64,000 nucleotides of DNA, from contig MU062841.1 of assembly GCA_013265495.1 (NCBI GenBank), positions 5,481,786-5,545,785 of the forward strand, given 5' to 3'. Shown here piece after piece: positions 6,308 through 59,928 of this stretch; the stretch's first letter is position 1, and every line of letters begins with the position of its first letter. The notes below the pieces were generated by a model that was not told the origin of the DNA, made no database searches, and saw only the letters and a list, made by a program, of their open reading frames with translations. Both the position numbers and the translations under genes were made by a program. The stretch comes from Vicugna vicugna. Its lineage: Eukaryota.

Positions 6308-6558
6308 TCAGAGGTCCAAGAGAAACCTCTTAACCTGGGCCAGGTATTTTGGTTTCAAATAGTCATCCAGCTCCTCCTTACTGACCCATACATGGTGGCC
6401 CTTCTTCCCGGCCTGGGAAAAGTCTCCAGTTAGTAGTAGTGCTTTAAAGAAGAATATTTTGGCCCCAAGGCTGCTCTCTGTCCGCACTGCCTGGGGGAAC
6501 TTGAACTTGTAGTGGCCACAGGGTGCATTTCCCAGGAACTTGGCTTCCATGTTGTTTT
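6308..6558 (-). CDS. MRPL46: MRPL46 coding exon 4 (251 nt to stop)
   Basis: Acceptor CCTCCTCCCTCAG|AA. Encodes [23 protein letters not shown]...RFLLDL, with TGA at 6310-6308. Confidence 0.96.
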
Positions 6559-9500
6559 CTGAGGGAGGAGGGGAAACAGAATCGGAAGATGAGGACACAC
6601 CTACCTGTTTACTCTGGTGCCCAAAATCATCAGGGTCTCTGTGAGAGTCACTTCCGGCCTGAAGTACAAAGCAATCCCTGGGAGTGAGAGCTCGGGTCAC
6701 TCCTGAAGACCCTCGTCTCCTCTCAATCCAAAGGCTCCCGATTCAGAGTCCACTCCTCGTGTCAAGCTACTGCTCTCAGGCTGAGGCCAGCAATGCAGCT
6801 CAAACACCACCACCGGGGAGTCAGAGCCCCGAGCTTCTAGACTCAGCCGGGTCACTAGCTGTTGACAAAGGACCAAGACACTCGGTATCTGTAAAGCAAG
6901 GTTCGTCAGTCTTTTAAACGGAGTGTCTCATGGAAAGCATAAAAAGGACCCGATTTGACTGCTGCAGGGTGAAAACCAAAGTTAAAAGGCAAAGACAGAT
7001 GGACAGATGATATCTGCAATCTACAGCAAAGGGTTAGTAACCCCAACCCAGCTTTTCAAAGGATGAGGAAATGACGGATGAATTACTAAATGGCACTGGG
7101 AGGATGGACTAGCTAACAGGAAAAAATAAAGCTCACTCCCCATATCAAAACTGACACCATACAGATCAAGGATTTAACAGAAATGTAAAATTTTCCTAAA
7201 CAGTTTGTACATTCTGGGTGATGGTTTAATGGATGTTTAACAGTTTCTCAGTTTTCCTGTATTTTAAATTTTTTCATTAAAAAGAAACCATAAGAGTACT
7301 ATTTTAAAATGTCGGATACTTTCTGTATCATTTATGAGAGGGGGAAGTCCTAACCAAGACACAAAATTCAGAAATCCAAAAAGAGAAAACATATTTATTC
7401 ACATAGAAACTAAAATCTTTCTGCAAGGAAAAATGAAGCATAAAAATGTCACAGACCCAAAAAAACACAAACAAGGAAAAATATTTTCAACACATTCAAC
7501 AAAGGAATAATATCTTAAGGTATAAGTAGTATTTAGAAATCAATGAGGAAAAAAACCAACAACTCTAAAAGAAAAATGAATCAAAATATGAATAAGAAGT
7601 TTACATGAAAATAAGTATCAATGACCTATAAGCTCATTAAAAGATGCTCAATCTCATTAACAATCCAAGAAATATAAATTAAAACAACAACAATACATCA
7701 TTATTACTGAAGCTCAAAAACTGAGCTATACACTGCTCGTCAAGGATAAGGGAAAACTGGGTTCTCTCACACACACTGTGAGGATGTAATTAGTATAACT
7801 GCTATGATTGGCAAGAGGTATCAATTTTAATTACATATACCCTTTGATCTAGCTACTCTGCTTCTAGAATTTCATCTTTCTGGGTATATTTATTTGCCCA
7901 TATGAGCACAGCGGAGTATACGCAGATGTTCACTGTAGTTTTATTTGTAAAAGCAACAGACTGGTTAAAGTGCAGTACACACATATATGAAATGGTACAC
8001 TGGCATTAAAAGTATAAGATATGTTTTCACTTGCTGATAAAGAACTATGTTTAAAAGCTGTATATAAGAGAAAGGAAGGCATGTAACTGTGGGGGTGTGT
8101 ATGTGTGTGTACACATGCTCCCACTATGAAAAGAAAGAAACATAAAAAACCTATGTGCCTGCAAATTCTAAATGGATACACAAATAACTATCCATGGTGG
8201 CTGCCTCTGAGATGGGAAAATTACTTATTATTTCCTATAGTACTACATTTACTAGACACTGTTAGATATTTTTTCACAATATACAAGGAATTGCTCTTCT
8301 CAATATTAAAAACACCACCACCGTGATCAGCATGAGATGAGGGATTCATGTATGACATGAGTTCTCCTATAATACAGAATGTCAGCAGTGGGGATCTGTA
8401 GGTTGTGGAATTATATTGACATGCTTCTTTATACTTTTCTGAACTTTCCACTTAATTAAGTGAATACATACTACTTTTCTATATCTGGAAAAAATGGATT
8501 AAAATGTAATCAAATTTTTAAAAAAATTTCATTACAAACACAAGCCAAGAATCTAAATGGGTGGTTCACAGAAGAGATACAAACAGCCATAGGAAATACG
8601 AACATATGAAAAGATGATCAATCTCACCAGCAGTCAAGAAACTGCTAATCCAAAAGAGATCATTTTTTTACTGACTGGACAGGCAAAAATTTTAAAAAGA
8701 GACTACTTCACACGTTGGGAGGTCGAGACAAACAGGCACTCTTATACACCACTCCTGAAAATGTCAAATGTTGTGCATGTTCTGCAGGACACTTGGGCAG
8801 TATCTATCAAACACTGAAAGGTGTCATCCTTGACCACTACTTCCACGTCAAGGAGTTCCATCTTGCAGACACACTTGGGAAGTGTGCCAGTGGGGAGGAA
8901 AGGAACATCTGACTTTTTTATGTATGTACTTTTATATTGCTTGAGCTTTTCTTTGCCATTTTAATTATTTTATATTATTTGCCATTTTAATGAATTTGAA
9001 ATAAATCAACATATTTCATTTTACATGCATCTATAAAATACTAATGTATCCTTTCACACTTATTTATGACAATGGGAATGTTAAAAGGAAAAAAGCATGG
9101 TGCTAAGGGGAGCCCCTTCCACGTGGCGCACAACAAGTGGGGCTGAGCATCTAGATACAATACCCTACAAGAAACCCAGCTGCCAACTCCAGTGTGATGG
9201 CTAAGAAAACTGAGAGCGCAGCAGAAGCCCCTCCCATTCCATCTGTCTCCTTACCTCTCCTGCAGGCCACACAGCCCCTCTCAGGAAAGGATCAAGACAG
9301 CACACCCGGCTGCTGACATTTCATTGGCAGGTACTTACGCTGGTGGCAGGGCCAGTAAAGTGGCTGTGCGTTTATACCACCAAATCATTTACTCAATACG
9401 CATTCAGCAAGTACCTACTATGTGTCAGGTACTTTGCTAGATACTAACTATATTTTCAAGGGAGTCAGAATTCTGGCTGGGGAGAGACCATGTGTTACTA

Positions 9501-12500
9501 ATTATACAGCAATGGAATAAATGAAGAACGTCTTCTCCGCTGAACGTAATCTCCCAGGAAGCACAGGTAGTGCCCTGTTCATCACTGTGACCCCACTGCC
9601 TGGGGAGTGTCCAGCAAACCCTGGGCACAGAGTAAATGTGTGCTGCATCAACTGAGTAAGGGCACACACAAGTGCTAGGAAGCCTAGAGGGAGGAGTAGC
9701 TCCCTCTACCTACAAGGTTCCACCACAGAAGACAGAATGTACGAGCTGCATTTTAAAAACTGAGCAGTCAGGCTAGAGAGGAATAAAGCCTTCCAGGCAG
9801 GGACCAGACCCCAAAACAGAGACACATGAAAAACCACATTATTCATGGAATACAAAAGGTTTGCTAGGTTAGAACTTAGAATATACGTTAATGAGTGGCA
9901 AGACGGAAGACTGATGAGCTTGAGAACAGAGCAAAAAGGATCTGTAGACCATGCTCGAAAGTCTGCTTTTATGGGAAACCCTTTAAGAATTCTAGGCAGA
10001 GAAGTGACAAGGGAATTGTGTTTTAGAAGGCTCAAGCTGGTGCATTGAAGAGTATGACACGAAAGCAAGGGGGAACTTATTTGGCATCTACTTCAATGGT
10101 CCAGTGTAGTGGTTCTCAACCACTGTGACTTCACTGCCCAGGTAACATCTGGCAATGCCAAGAGATATTTTTGGTTATCACACTAGGAGGAGTGGGGATG
10201 GGTTAGCGCTACTGGCATCCAGCAGGCAGGGATCAGAGATGTTGCTAAACATCTTACAATGCACGGAAGCCCCCAGAAAGAATCATCTCGCCCCAAATTT
10301 CAACAGTGCTAACGCTGAGAAACCTTGGTCTAGTGACAAATGAAAAGGGCCACAGTTAAAGCCACAGGAATAAACAGGGGACTACTAAGAACAAACCATG
10401 TTGGATTCACAGGCTTATGGATGCTAGAAAGAGGTCAGGGATAACTGAGGTTTCTAGTTAGGTGAATGGGTAAAGGGTGGTGTCAGTAAGCAAGGCTGCA
10501 AGGACAAAAAGAGAAGTAGCTGAGAGAATGGTAGAAACAGCAACTCTGAATGTACTAAATATAAAAATCTCCATGGGGGAGAGGGAGCACGCAGGGATGG
10601 TGCCTGCCAGCCTCTGTCCATGAAGGGTATTCCAGTAGGCCCCTAGATGTGTGCTAAATTGGAGGCCTGCCCCCCAGACCAATGCTTTATGTTAAGCAAA
10701 CAAGCCTTTTTCACAGCAAGTCTGGGTGCTTTTCAATTGGCTGCCTCTGCACTGGGCCTTCAGGGGCAGAATCTCAATCATAGCTGTCAGGGACAATACA
10801 GACTGTTAAAAACCAAGCAAAATGAGGCAAAAGAGAATAACCAACCAAGATATCTTCCTCAAAATGATACCAGATGGCCAAGAAATGAAAAATCTCATTT
10901 TCAAAGGAACACCCAAAATTCAAAGTCAATCTTAGAACTAGGCAGTGGATTACCTAGACACAGAGGTTCTGAAAGACCGAGCACTTCTCCAAGATCTGAA
11001 GTACAGGCTGCAGAGATGGAATGTGACAGACCACATTCGAGATGTGACAGAACTGAAGCTACTCCACATCATCTAAGTTCTCAGCACAATGATGCTGCTT
11101 TAAAAAAGAGGGGTAGCTCTATGTAAAGCAGATCAGGAAAAGGTCCATACTCTGCAGAGGTGAAAGAAAATCCACTTCCCTCAAGAATCCATAAATTATA
11201 CTAACCAAGAATGTGGGAAAAGAGAAAACCAAACAGCAAATCCTGATCATTTTTATGACAGGAACCACAACAATAAATAATGATGCTTTCAGTGCTGTAA
11301 AACCTGAAACACATCTCAACACTAGTACTGATTATCAGAATCTTGTTGGAACTAACAGTTTCACTGGTGCTCCAAATGGAGAGACAAACATGCCACTGAA
11401 GGGAAGGCCAATAGGACCTACTAAGCCAGACCCATCATAGCTACACCCTACTGATGATAAAACAGTTTATAGCACTGTGCCCAAAAGAAGATCCGGGTCA
11501 ATTAAACCAGAAACATTACTGGAATCACTTATTTCTATGGAGAATGCAAAACTGTGGAAACCTGGAGGAAAGTGTTTTGCACTTTATTGGAAGACACAAG
11601 CTTTACCGAGCAGAAGCTGCAACTCCATTCTTCAAGTATGACAGCAGTGTATGGAAACTGTGAAGTGCTACTAAGCAACAATCGGCCCATTCAAATAGAG
11701 GCAGGGAGGAAGACCGCATCTACAACCAAATTCCTGACCTCCGCAGAGGAGGTGATGGCCAGCCAGGATGATGCACTCAGCCAACCCAACAGTTCTACCA
11801 ACCTCCCCAGGCTCAGAACTAATAATGAGAAGAGTCTTTGCGAAGAAAGAGTGGTGACTGAAATATCCTGGTCAACACCTGTTGCCAGACCTCCTACTTT
11901 CCCAACAGAATAAAATGCAGCCATGGTGGATATTATCATTTGGAGAATGAAAAAGTAGATTTTAGGGGAAAAAAAATTCAACCCACACAGAGAATGAGGA
12001 AAAAATGTGCAGTTAAATAAAGCAAAGAACTTTTACAAGTGAAAGAGAGAATTCTTCCTTCTGCCATCAATAAAACCAATGTGCTGTTATAAAAATAAAT
12101 AAATAAATAATTTAAAAGAAATAAAATAGAAATAAAATTTTAAAATCTCAGTGATAGAAATACTCTCACTTGATCTAAGATTATCTTCCTAGCTGAAATT
12201 TTTATAAATACCCAAGTTTCCGTTAACCTTCCCACCTCCGATCCTTAAAGTCATGCCCACAGTCAGCCTGCAAATCCTCTGGCTGAGTCCGGTGTGTTTT
12301 GTGGTGTTTAAGGGAGGCAAAGAACTCACCTGAGAGGTTCACCAGGCTTCGCTCAGCTGTTTGTCGCAGAGTCTCCCCGGGCTGCCACTCTGCCTGTGGC
12401 AGCATCCACAGATCCTGGTCTCCAAGCTTCTCTTTTATCAACAGAATAAGGTTCCTGTCCAGTTTGCGGTGCAATGAGGTTTGGTCATTCTTTTCATCGG

Positions 12501-14753
12501 CTTCTGCAAAGAAAACAGGGGGTCAGAGGAGACAAGAACTCTACGACCTGCCAGAACCAAGAAGATTAGAGTTTTACAGTCCTTCTTTAAGGTAGAGCCA
12601 CAACCTTGGCCCTCAAAGAGCTATTAATCAAATTACAACCCTGACCCGTCTCTCTAACTCTGGCCCTCTCTCAAGATAGTCTCCCAATCTTGAGGAAACT
12701 AAACTGTAACGAGAAGAAATCAGAAGCTGAACTCTTCCTTTGAAGAGCAAACTATAAAGTACTTTGAGCCTTTGGAAAAGCAATACCCAAACACTATTTC
12801 TTTGGTTTGGACACTCTTACTGACTTAACCAGTCCCTACTTTCTCTGTTCTTTGGTCTTCATTATGAAACAAAGATAAGAGAACTCATTCCCCTGCTTTA
12901 GGATATATTTCAGCTAAAACACAGGAAACTAACGGTAAAGGCTTAATTCCTGCCCTCTTAGTCCCAAACTAGGAGTTAAACTCAGATAATACCCATGAAT
13001 TTTAACTGAGACAGAAAAGGCTATCCCAAAACTCTTACCTCCCAGTCAAAAATAACAGACTTTTTAAAAAGTAAACTAGGGTAGATGTGAGGAACAGGGA
13101 AAAGAATTCATTTTTCTTTTACCTGAAAGAAGTTTTGTCATCCAAAATCATTTGTAACTTAAAACACAAAGCAGGGGTGAAGCAACTGTCCTCTGTTTGG
13201 GAACCATACCACCCACCTTTCCATACCTCTAACTGGCCTGAATAGACCACAAACCTGTTATTCGAGCCCCAGGTTTGAACTGTAGGAATTTCTGCTCCCA
13301 CATGTCTTCCAAATCTTGAGCCAGCAATATATTTTGCTCATCTTCTTCTTCTTCATAAAGGTCACTTTTCCTCTTTTCCAGTTGCTGGGCTTCTTCCAAA
13401 GCACGAAGCTCATGGTCTGAATACAGACTTCTCTCTATCTCGATCTGAGAAAATTAAAAGGGCAAAAATCTACCCCAAACTGGGAAAATTAAAAGGACCA
13501 AAAAAACAGGCAGACTAAAACAGAGCTACAGCACACCTGACAGACTCAGACTGTTTACCACCCAACATAACCAGACACATAATCAAAACACCACAGTGAA
13601 AACAGAGAAAGGATAAAGGTCACCTGCACTTTGGGCCTAAGTTATATTTGCTAAAATGTCTAATTGTGATTGGAGGTCAGGGCTACTACAAAGAACAGGA
13701 GACTAGGACAGGCATTGCCTACCCAGTTACCACCCTCTAGTCATGTAAGTCTTTGATCAGAATCTCACTCATCATGGACTTTCCTGCCTCAGGAAGTTTA
13801 CATATGCTGTTCCTTCTTCCTAGGGTGTTTTAACTCATGCTTTCCTAGGAGATTCCTACTCACCCTTTGGAACTCGATTTAAATATCATTATCTTAAGAA
13901 AGATATTCCTTGACACCCCCCATAAAATCAAATTAAGTGTCTCTGTTAAACACTCTTTCTGTACCCTGTGTTTTCCTTTACAATGCTAACCAGAGACTGC
14001 AGTTCCACATAGGATTATTTGGTTATTGACTGACACCTCCTCCACTAGCCTGAAGTGCTCTGAGAACCAGAGCTATGTCTGTCTTACTCACCACTGCATC
14101 TCTAACAGTTAACATAAGGTCTGTATCAAACAGCTGCTAAATGATTATCTGTAAAGTGATTAATACAATATTTACAGAGTAAATTAAAAAGCACGTAAGT
14201 GAGGTTTATATCTCTCAGTAGCCAAGACAAAAACATCACAAGTTCTGGGGAAACACAGTATCTTTTAATCACTCTCTATGGGGATTTAACCCCCTCAGAG
14301 CCATTACACTTGTTTTTGCCCATGTTTCTTTATTTGTCCCTCATACAAATAAACTTTATTACTTACTCTTGCAGGTAAGTATACTGAAATTCATAGAACT
14401 AAAGTGACTTTCCCAAGGTCACACAGATTAATCGGTGCCTGAGTCAGTCTCAAACCCAGGCCAGCGTGCCTCTATTGCTTCCCCAGCTGTGGCCTTGAAG
14501 CCATGGCCCGCACCTCAGGTCTCACCTGCTGCAGCAGAGCCGCCATCTCTTCCTGCAAGGGGGTCAGCGGCTTCGAGACCAGAGGTGGCCGCTGCAGGCA
14601 CAACGCGCCCATCAGGCGCCATGGAGACCCGCTGCTCGAGGGCGCGGCGGCAAGGGCCAGGCTGCGAGAACCCAGGCTACGGGGCCAGGGGCCCTCGAAA
14701 CGCCGCCAGCCTCTCGCCACCCCTAACACAGTCCGCCTTATAGGCGCCGCCAT
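6308..14753 (-). CDS. MRPL46: Mitochondrial ribosomal protein L46, spliced CDS complement(join 14526-14753, 13255-13444, 12330-12503, 6308-6558) = 843 nt, 280 aa
   Basis: The four exons translate in continuous frame: [11 protein letters not shown]...MAALLQQ / [16 protein letters not shown]...PGARIT / [19 protein letters not shown]...AERSLVNLS / [19 protein letters not shown]...KRFLLDL*. This matches recalled human MRPL46. All introns are GT-AG and the phases (0,1,1) are consistent. Confidence 0.97.
7340..8300 (+). mobile_element. Ancient L1 (L1M/L1ME-type) ORF2 3' end and 3'UTR fragments
   Basis: A-rich sequence with L1 3' hallmarks (AAAAGATGCTCAATCTCATT, TTTGATCTAGCTACTCTGCTTCTAGAATT, CACTGTAGTTTTATTTGTAAAAGC). 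A further fragment lies at ~8530-8830. Confidence 0.7.
10107..10327 (+). mobile_element. MER20 (hAT-Charlie MITE)
   Basis: TAGTGGTTCTCAAC...GCTACTGGCATC...TGCTAAACATCTTACAATGCAC...TGAGAAACCTTG matches the recalled MER20 consensus. Confidence 0.85.
10777..12143 (+). pseudogene. TDRD3: 5'-truncated processed pseudogene (retrocopy) of TDRD3, antisense within MRPL46 intron 3
   Basis: Stitched + frames give QGQYR...[10 protein letters not shown]...[16 protein letters not shown]...[10 protein letters not shown]...[12 protein letters not shown]...KLYRAE...[19 protein letters not shown]...[21 protein letters not shown] (stop 11820-11822). This matches the recalled C-terminal half of human TDRD3, including the Tudor domain. 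No introns; several stops and frameshifts; AATAAA at 12069-12074; A-rich tail at ~12091-12143; candidate TSD AATCTCA at 10770-10776 and 12144-12150. Confidence 0.93.
12330..12503 (-). CDS. MRPL46: MRPL46 coding exon 3 (174 nt)
   Basis: Acceptor TTTCTTTGCAG|AA and donor TCAG|GTGAGT. Encodes the Nudix-like segment [18 protein letters not shown]. Confidence 0.96.
13255..13444 (-). CDS. MRPL46: MRPL46 coding exon 2 (190 nt)
   Basis: Acceptor TTTTCTCAG|ATC and donor ACAG|GTTTGT. Encodes [63 protein letters not shown]. Not in the ORF track. Confidence 0.95.
13780..14165 (+). mobile_element. L2 3' end fragment
   Basis: CTCTGAGAACCAGAGCTATGTCTGTCTTACTCACCACTGCATCTC is characteristic of the L2 terminus. 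Confidence 0.6.
14526..14753 (-). CDS. MRPL46: MRPL46 coding exon 1 (228 nt, includes mitochondrial targeting peptide)
   Basis: ATG at 14753 in context AAGATGGCG. Arg/Leu/Ser-rich N-terminus. Donor CAG|GTGAG at 14526/14525. Confidence 0.96.
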
Positions 14754-15137
14754 CTTACAACTTTCCCACAAGGTACCGCGCTCCCAACGGGGTTTTGGGC
14801 CAATCCCTTGTTCCCACAAGGCAGCGCGGGAGCGGCCAGACGGGAAGAGCTCGGTTCCCCAGAACTACTAGAACGAACCATTCCAATTTGGAGGGGTGGG
14901 CGAAGATCTCATATTAAAAAATTAGGAAAAGTGGGAGATTCCCAGTTGCACTCGTAATGATAGTTATTATGGAGCGTATAATTGGGAATACAAATCTTTA
15001 ATGTACCTTATGAAGAGGAATCAGATGACTTTTCCTCTGCACCCCCCCCCACTAGCGCTCGTGGTGCTGGCGCCGCTCCAACTCCACCAAGCTCCGCGGT
15101 CTCCGCGGCCGGGGCCTGAGTGGGGTCAACTTAAGTC
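14754..15137. promoter_or_regulatory. Bidirectional CpG-rich promoter shared by MRPL46 and MRPS11
   Basis: The divergent ATGs at 14753 and 15138 are 384 bp apart, with CpG-dense flanks (~14500-14860 and ~15050-15560). Motifs: YY1-type AAGATGGCGGC overlapping the MRPL46 start, CCAAT at 14800-14804, and two ZNF143/SBS-like TTCCCACAAGG copies at 14763-14773 and 14811-14821. Confidence 0.85.
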
Positions 15138-24369
<9,232 letters not shown>

Positions 24370-37199: not shown

Positions 37200-37695
37200 T
37201 CACTTCTGGGTATATATCCAAAAGAATTGAAAGCAGGATCTCAAAGAGGTATTTGCACACTTATNNNNNNNNNNNNNNNNNNNNNNNNNNNNNNNNNNNN
37301 NNNNNNNNNNNNNNNNNNNNNNNNNNNNNNNNNNNNNNNNNNNNNNNNNNNNNNNNNNNNNNNNNNNNNNNNNNNNNNNNNNNNNNNNNNNNNNNNNNNN
37401 NNNNNNNNNNNNNNNNNNNNNNNNNNNNNNNNNNNNNNNNNNAGTGAAATAAGAGACACAAAATGACAAATACTGTACAATTCTATTTATATGAGGTAAC
37501 TAAAGTAGTCATTCATAGAAACAGAAGGAGCTGGGATGAGGGGGAGATGCGAAATTATCGTTTAATGGATATAGAAGTTTGCAAGGTGAAAAAGCTGTAG
37601 AGATTTGTTGCACAACAATGTGAACGTACTTAACACTACTGAACAATACTCTTAGAAATAGGTAAGGTGGGAAATTTTGTTTTTTACCAAAACTA
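37200..37695 (+). mobile_element. L1 3' end (L1MA/MB-like) spanning an N gap; further antisense L1 at ~37990-38590
   Basis: CCACTTCTGGGTATATATCCAAAAGAATTGAAAGCAGG, AGTGAAATAAG...ACAAATACTGTA and CACAACAATGTGAACGTACTTAACACTACTGAAC. Confidence 0.8.
37265..37442. other. Assembly gap (178 N)
   Basis: N run inside an L1. Confidence 1.
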
Positions 37696-41099: not shown

Positions 41100-41271
41100 N
41101 NNNNNNNNNNNNNNNNNNNNNNNNNNNNNNNNNNNNNNNNNNNNNNNNNNNNNNNNNNNNNNNNNNNNNNNNNNNNNNNNNNNNNNNNNNNNNNNNNNNN
41201 NNNNNNNNNNNNNNNNNNNNNNNNNNNNNNNNNNNNNNNNNNNNNNNNNNNNNNNNNNNNNNNNNNNNNNN
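41100..41271. other. Assembly gap (172 N)
   Basis: N run. Confidence 1.
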
Positions 41272-45241: not shown

Positions 45242-59857
<14,616 letters not shown>

Positions 59858-59928
59858 NNNNNNNNNNNNNNNNNNNNNNNNNAAGTAGGAGTCAAGCAAA
59901 TAAAAGACAATTTCTCAAAACATAAACA

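Follow-up and report, generated by a model that had tools for sequence, protein, structure and literature searches.

A processed TDRD3 copy with an L1-antisense leader in intron 3 of MRPL46, probably retroposed from a spliced chimeric mRNA

We analysed a stretch of 64,000 nucleotides from Vicugna vicugna (assembly GCA_013265495.1, contig MU062841.1, positions 5,481,786 to 5,545,785 of the forward strand; hereafter the window), which carries the gene MRPL46 on its reverse strand. Intron 3 of MRPL46 (6559-12329, 5771 nt) was found to contain, on the opposite strand, a processed copy of TDRD3 that comprises its last four exons, preceded by a leader in antisense orientation to the 5' untranslated region (UTR) of an old L1 family (Table 1). 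An initial annotation, made from the letters of the window alone, had placed a TDRD3 retrocopy antisense in this intron, and the exon model of MRPL46 bears out that placement. The gene was modelled by hand; a genome search with PF11788 gave no match, and the controls were likewise without a match. The model encodes an intact protein of 280 amino acids, with 98% identity to the MRPL46 of Camelus and 82-90% in other orders, and the DNA of the locus was 96.7% identical to that of Camelus ferus across 9.4 kb.

Table 1. Positions of the inserted unit, of the parental TDRD3 exons on contig C10588 of the same genome and of the MRPL46 exons. Positions without a contig name are those of the window.
Feature	Position	Strand	Remarks
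5' target-site duplication copy	10557-10573	.	AAATATAAAAATCTC + CA; border uncertain by about 8 nt
Leader, 197 nt	10574-10770	+	antisense to 5'UTR of old L1 family; ends CAG
Large TDRD3 exon copy	10771-11600	+	parent C10588:238625-239475, from its first base
Second exon copy	11601-11706	+	parent C10588:250213-250338; 15-nt and smaller deletions
Last coding exon copy	11707-11832	+	parent C10588:280158-280283; parental TGA is TAA at 11820-11822
3'UTR exon copy	11833-12089	+	parent C10588:285424-285673; 87.5% identity; AATAAA at 12069-12074
Decayed A-rich tail	12090-12134	+	begins where parental genomic homology stops
3' target-site duplication copy	12135-12151	.	AAATTTTAAAATCTC + AG; contains the 3' AATCTCA of the initial annotation
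Parental large exon	C10588:238625-239475		translates without stops
Next parental exon	C10588:250213-250338		second half of Tudor domain
Last coding parental exon	C10588:280158-280283		holds stop codon
Parental 3'UTR exon	C10588:285424-285673		
MRPL46 exons 1, 2	14753 (ATG)-14526; 13444-13255	-	exon model
MRPL46 exon 3	12330-12503	-	exon model; donor 179 nt from insert
MRPL46 exon 4, coding part with stop	6308-6558	-	exon model

From 10771 to 12089 the forward strand of the window reproduces the four final exons of TDRD3, spliced together without introns. When positions 10777-12143 were searched against the genome of the same animal, three places were found on C10588 besides the window itself (E = 1e-232, 3e-69, and 4e-21), matches far stronger than chance would give, and a fourth parental exon was recovered from this region by sensitive blastn. 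No other strong match beyond C10588 and the window was found in this search. The parental exons lie 10.7, 29.8, and 5.1 kb apart, and the introns between them have consensus splice sites at their borders (AG/GT), whereas their copies in the window are contiguous and collinear with the parent, with junctions at 11600/11601, 11706/11707, and 11832/11833 and no introns. The claim of a processed copy was thus sustained at all three junctions.

The scattered fragments of open reading frame (ORF), which had earlier been stitched into about 365 C-terminal residues of TDRD3, were found to cover 363 parental codons and the stop codon. A piece of 54 amino acids (window 11477-11638) matched the TDRD3 Tudor structure 3pnw_C in the PDB search (E = 1.7e-9), and the remaining PDB matches of this piece were all TDRD3. 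The short translated pieces of the copy had no Tudor match in Pfam, because they are short and broken. The protein of the parental large exon showed 95% identity to narwhal and 93% to pangolin sequences, 91% to a red deer protein named 'TDRD3, partial' and 89% to a bat protein named 'Tudor domain containing 3'. Two further coding exons were found upstream in the parent (C10588:225350-225523 and 226161-226334), the former of which aligned with residues 27-84 of a homologue bearing UBA Pfam domains. These matches identify TDRD3 as the parent rather than another Tudor gene. The grounds on which the initial annotation would have been given up were all checked: alignment to TDRD3 was present, the parental introns were not retained, and no better match to another Tudor gene was found.

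The corresponding loci of ten other species were fetched via their MRPL46 orthologues, and the flanks aligned in all ten. The insert was found at the same site and in the same orientation in MRPL46 intron 3 of Camelus ferus, Phocoena, Budorcas, Equus, Canis, and Manis. Together with the window the carriers number seven and belong to four orders, Cetartiodactyla, Perissodactyla, Carnivora, and Pholidota. The insert was absent from Rhinolophus, Phyllostomus, Talpa, and Eulemur. The earlier suggestion that the retrocopy might be lineage-restricted stands in so far as it is lacking from a primate (Eulemur), but the copy is common to four orders and is not specific to camelids. The junction of the empty site was read for Eulemur, Rhinolophus, and Talpa. 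The lemur site reads ...GAATGTACTAAATTTAAAAATCTCATTGGGAC... with one AAATTTAAAAATCTC-like copy, and the sites of Rhinolophus and Talpa are likewise single.

Just upstream of the empty target site, at a distance of a few bases, each bat had an insert of its own of about 300 bp (6510-6835 of the Rhinolophus locus L028; about 6600-6950 of the Phyllostomus locus L031). The insert of Rhinolophus was bounded by the inverted ends CAGTTGACCC...GGGTCAACTG, and in Phyllostomus the reading covered the CAGCTGACCC-type end alone. The insert resembles a non-autonomous DNA transposon that was fixed before the split of the two bat suborders.

The inserted unit at the MRPL46 locus comprises positions 10574-12134, with one tail and one target-site duplication. 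The AAATTTAAAAATCTC-like duplication of about 15-18 bp lies on both sides of leader, TDRD3 part, and tail in the filled species, and it was found to flank the insert in six of the six filled species other than the vicugna. G-rich microhomology with the leader leaves the border of its 5' copy in the window uncertain by about 8 nt. The target was cut at CT/AAAT, a site of the A/T-rich type, and cut sites of this type are expected for the L1 endonuclease. At the 3' end the previously reported AATAAA and A-rich tail are present as claimed: TDRD3 homology stops at 12089, which is 15 nt past AATAAA, and an A-rich run follows in every species that retains the 3' end. At the 5' end the homology begins at the exon border. 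The parental exon follows a TTTTCAG acceptor and starts AACCTAAATCACAGCCG, and positions 10771-10787 of the window read AATCTCAATCATAGCTG. In Equus, Canis, and Manis the junction reads GGGGC(A/G)G with AACCTAAATCAC immediately after it, and AACCTAAATCAC is how the parental exon begins. The start at 10777/10778 given by the initial annotation is therefore moved to 10771 for the TDRD3 homology and to about 10574 for the inserted unit. We consider 10574-12134 to be, very probably, the product of a single L1-mediated retroposition.

A deletion was observed at 10787, just past the start of the TDRD3 part. In the window and Camelus it removes 11 nt, and in Phocoena and Budorcas 9 nt. The four cetartiodactyl copies alone have it, while Equus, Canis, and Manis lack it, so that it constitutes a minor synapomorphy of Cetartiodactyla.

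The leader belongs to a dispersed repeat, as positions 10574-10766 had at least 40 copies in the genome at 70-81% identity. The copies of this family share more than 2 kb of homology, and most of them end at a common point about 410 nt past the leader match. On the strand opposite the leader the family copies carry L1 ORF1, which was identified through a fragment of the RBD-like domain (Pfam PF02994, E = 1.5e-5, above the cut-off) and through a PDB match to LINE-1 ORF1p (E = 0.001); three coiled-coil fragments gave nothing useful in Pfam. From the opposite ORF1 and the shared end of the copies, the leader is identified as antisense sequence of the L1 5'UTR, at about nt 410-600 counted from the 5' end of the element. 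It lies directly between the flank and the TDRD3 part in every filled species, it is absent at the empty sites read in Eulemur, Rhinolophus, and Talpa, and no match to it was found in Phyllostomus. The leader was co-inserted with the TDRD3 part. It is about as decayed as that part, and it was 82.7% identical to the column-wise majority of the family copies, the copies themselves having a mean of 77.3%. Since the leader is nearer to the majority than the copies are, its source L1 was near the master sequence of the family when copied, and probably still young.

The junction between leader and TDRD3 meets a splice-site consensus on the L1 side and an exon start on the TDRD3 side. The leader ends ...GGGGCAG where the L1 family reads ...CAG/GTGAGTCC, which agrees with the donor consensus CAG/GTGAGT (the slash marks the border), and 15 of the 27 family copies that reach the junction keep GTGAG, GTGAA or GTAAG within -10 to +12 nt. 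As the junction lies exactly at a donor consensus and at the first base of an exon, it was most likely made by splicing, and the template would then be a chimeric L1-antisense/TDRD3 mRNA.

Two other origins were weighed against this splicing. The initial annotation had described a TDRD3 retrocopy (10778-12143) that was simply cut short at its 5' end, with AATCTCA as a 7-bp duplication. On this model the retrocopy would have landed by chance beside a repeat fragment already in place. AATCTCA does stand at 10771-10777 and at 12144-12150. Its 5' occurrence, however, aligns with AACCTAA, the seven bases with which the parental exon opens, and still reads AACCTAA in Equus, Canis, and Manis, so that it is the start of the TDRD3 exon and not one end of a duplication. 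The longer duplication, single at the empty sites, brackets leader and TDRD3 together, and the upstream repeat is present in all filled species and missing from the empty sites of Eulemur, Rhinolophus, and Talpa. No continuation of the leader repeat was found on the far side of the insert, where it scored no better than shuffles. With a start at an exon border and a co-inserted leader before it, the copy is highly unlikely to be a plain truncation. A short look-alike beside a repeat can thus mislead calls of retrocopy borders and duplications when these are made from a single genome. The other origin is a template switch, in which the L1 reverse transcriptase left the TDRD3 mRNA for an unrelated RNA containing antisense L1. 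Two unrelated parts with one tail and one duplication are what such a jump would leave, and the source L1 was not found in the TDRD3 locus searched; but the junction lies on the first base of a TDRD3 exon and also on a strong 5' splice-site consensus of the L1 family, and a randomly placed jump would have had to hit both by coincidence. We regard a template switch as improbable, though less so than a plain truncation.

The state of the copy bears on a further proposal, that it is functional, either as a truncated Tudor-domain retrogene or as an antisense regulator of TDRD3 through pairing of MRPL46 intron RNA with TDRD3 mRNA. With gaps excluded, the copy was 84% identical to its parent on C10588; the coding part was 83.7% identical, with a Kimura two-parameter (K2P) distance of 0.19, and the K2P distance of the 3'UTR was 0.14. 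Read in the parental frame, the copy has about 12 frameshifting indels and 3 in-frame stops. The three codon positions have changed at nearly equal rates (mismatches of 0.149, 0.147, and 0.194 at positions 1, 2, and 3), and 244 of the 364 parental positions (363 codons and the stop) were unchanged. A functional reading could appeal to an ORF of 159 amino acids (10647-11126, + strand), with an ATG within the L1-derived leader, which continues into TDRD3 sequence, and to RNA sequencing (RNA-seq), since 21-36% of the sampled words of the insert were present in assembled contigs of four runs from two studies. The Tudor domain, however, is broken by frameshifts and the 15-nt deletion. The insert is conserved between species only as much as the flanking intron, and the lesions are specific to lineages, with two SINE (short interspersed element) insertions in Phocoena and loss of the 3' third in Budorcas. 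The ATG of the leader is in the TDRD3 frame only by virtue of the 11-nt deletion, a length found in the two camelid copies alone; therefore the ORF is most likely due to chance, and a chimeric coding ORF was rejected. The RNA-seq contigs hold no strand information, and their word content is what would be expected from an unspliced MRPL46 intron. We found no sign of function in species identity, lesions, ORF or RNA-seq contig words. A functional copy is accordingly very doubtful, about as much so as a plain truncation; the copy evolves neutrally and is a dead pseudogene.

The lesions of two species are described here in more detail. In Phocoena (locus L024) two later SINEs of the cetartiodactyl tRNA-derived type (GGGACTTCCCTGGTGG...) were found. 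One lies inside the TDRD3 copy, and the other lies right after the 3' duplication, where it re-uses and re-duplicates the AAAAATCTCAGTG target. In Budorcas (locus L025) the retrocopy is missing from within the second TDRD3 exon onward, and unrelated sequence stands in its place.

The account that we prefer is L1-mediated retroposition of a spliced L1-antisense/TDRD3 chimeric mRNA in an ancestor of the four orders, and we hold it with considerable confidence. Antisense-strand sequence of an L1 5'UTR would have supplied the 5' exon of a polyadenylated chimeric mRNA. The CAG/GTGAGT donor of this exon would have been spliced onto the acceptor of the large TDRD3 exon, with three more TDRD3 exons next. 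Transcription may have begun at the antisense promoter of the L1 and not at some point farther upstream. The mRNA would then have been retroposed by the L1 machinery into MRPL46 intron 3, antisense to MRPL46, with a duplication of 15-18 bp. The common ancestor of Cetartiodactyla, Perissodactyla, Carnivora, and Pholidota would have received the insertion, at a time when the bats had already branched off. Without the N-terminal half of TDRD3 and without an evident promoter, the copy would have been non-functional from the outset and would have decayed neutrally since.

The distribution of the carriers dates the insertion after the split of the bats and before the radiation of the four orders, which by published timetrees corresponds to an age of roughly 75-80 million years. 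A maximum-likelihood tree of the exon-A part agrees with this placement. The two parental sequences stand on short branches, the stem of the retrocopies has a length near zero, and the cetartiodactyl copies form one clade with a support of 100/98, the path to the copy of the window being about 0.14 changes per site.

Several points weigh against the preferred account. The leader had no match in 160 kb of the camelid TDRD3 locus (C10588:128600-289399), which takes in the whole 12.3-kb intron before the large exon, and none within 10 kb upstream of the large exon in the narwhal. The source L1 may therefore have been lost, never fixed or situated elsewhere. The non-carriers comprise one primate, one eulipotyphlan, and two bats, with no afrotherian and no xenarthran, and a single presence/absence marker can mislead at this node through incomplete lineage sorting (PMC5453332).

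At its 5' end, about 10574, the insert may mark a start of transcription or else a point of truncation; in the latter case the L1 piece would be an internal exon of a longer RNA. That the leader is the fossil of a transcript from the antisense promoter of a then-young, never-fixed L1 in a TDRD3 intron is possible, but we offer it tentatively and rather doubt it. If true, it would mean that some 75-80 million years ago L1 5'UTR antisense promoters were already making spliced chimeras with genes in the germ line, and that they did so in a lineage with no relation to the primate L1PA. A systematic survey of retrocopies could then recover extinct transcripts driven by transposable elements. On the preferred account the leader would in either case preserve the structure of an ancient spliced L1-antisense/TDRD3 transcript.

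The insert adds one marker to the disputed branching of Laurasiatheria. Doronina et al. (2017, PMC5453332) reported 14 retroposon markers which place Chiroptera outside these orders, and 8, 9, and 12 markers for the alternatives; the conflict is put down to incomplete lineage sorting there and in a later study by Doronina et al. (2022, PMC9141728). The present marker is one of the majority class, with bats outside the hoofed-plus-carnivore group. Because the published markers conflict at this node, the TDRD3 retrocopy alone cannot decide the branching. Neither MRPL46 nor TDRD3 is named in the paper of 2017, as far as its main text goes (the supplements were not searched). The present locus resembles their markers in its orthologous insertion, its clean empty sites, and its bats-empty pattern, but it is a processed pseudogene, whereas theirs are L1 or long terminal repeat elements.

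For the host gene, it follows from the geometry of the locus that the MRPL46 pre-mRNA must carry the reverse complement of the insert until the intron is removed. The initial annotation was right in this respect, and no consequence of such antisense TDRD3-like RNA has been demonstrated; the retrocopy today is passive intronic DNA. In each of nine orthologous loci (L023-L031), MRPS11 (PF00411; positions 1 to about 2650) and MRPL46 were found in head-to-head arrangement, and in Talpa the PF00411 call overlaps MRPL46. From this arrangement the window should hold a shared bidirectional promoter region at about 14750-15200, with MRPS11 above about 14900 on the + strand. Three runs of N were present in the window, at 37265-37442 (178 bases), 41100-41271 (172 bases), and 59751-59882 (132 bases).

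No paper on a TDRD3 pseudogene or on such a link between TDRD3 and MRPL46 was found in our literature search. Compared with processed pseudogenes in general, the present locus is alike in being a copy of a spliced, polyadenylated mRNA that ends at the parental cleavage site, with an A tail and a disabled frame, and in its target-site duplication of 15-18 bp at an A/T-rich site. It differs at the 5' end, which is a foreign L1-antisense exon and neither the start of the TDRD3 mRNA nor a random truncation. Chimeric retrogenes of U6, L1, and mRNA parts reportedly arise by template switching, as described by Buzdin and colleagues. Such retrogenes (U6-L1, U6-mRNA) likewise join two unrelated RNA-derived parts with one tail and one duplication, but their junctions are not tied to splice sites, whereas the junction here lies at a donor consensus and an exon start.

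Chimeric transcripts from the antisense promoter of the human L1 are well described (Criscione et al., 2016, PMC4908685; PMC9396940), with Speek (2001) as the source cited for them in PMC6501411, and antisense activity has been measured for one pig L1 5'UTR (PMC6501411). The present case is like these in that antisense sequence of the 5'UTR, lying a few hundred nt in from the 5' end of the element, would have been spliced to an exon of a neighbouring gene. It is unlike them in that it is known only from a retroposed DNA fossil, so that splicing is deduced from DNA, and in that the source L1 was not found in the present TDRD3 locus, initiation in the L1 being only putative. The L1 family here is moreover old, and its 5'UTR is unrelated to that of the human L1PA. 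Among these systems the retrocopy itself is an ordinary pseudogene of a known type, and it is the L1-antisense leader that is unusual.

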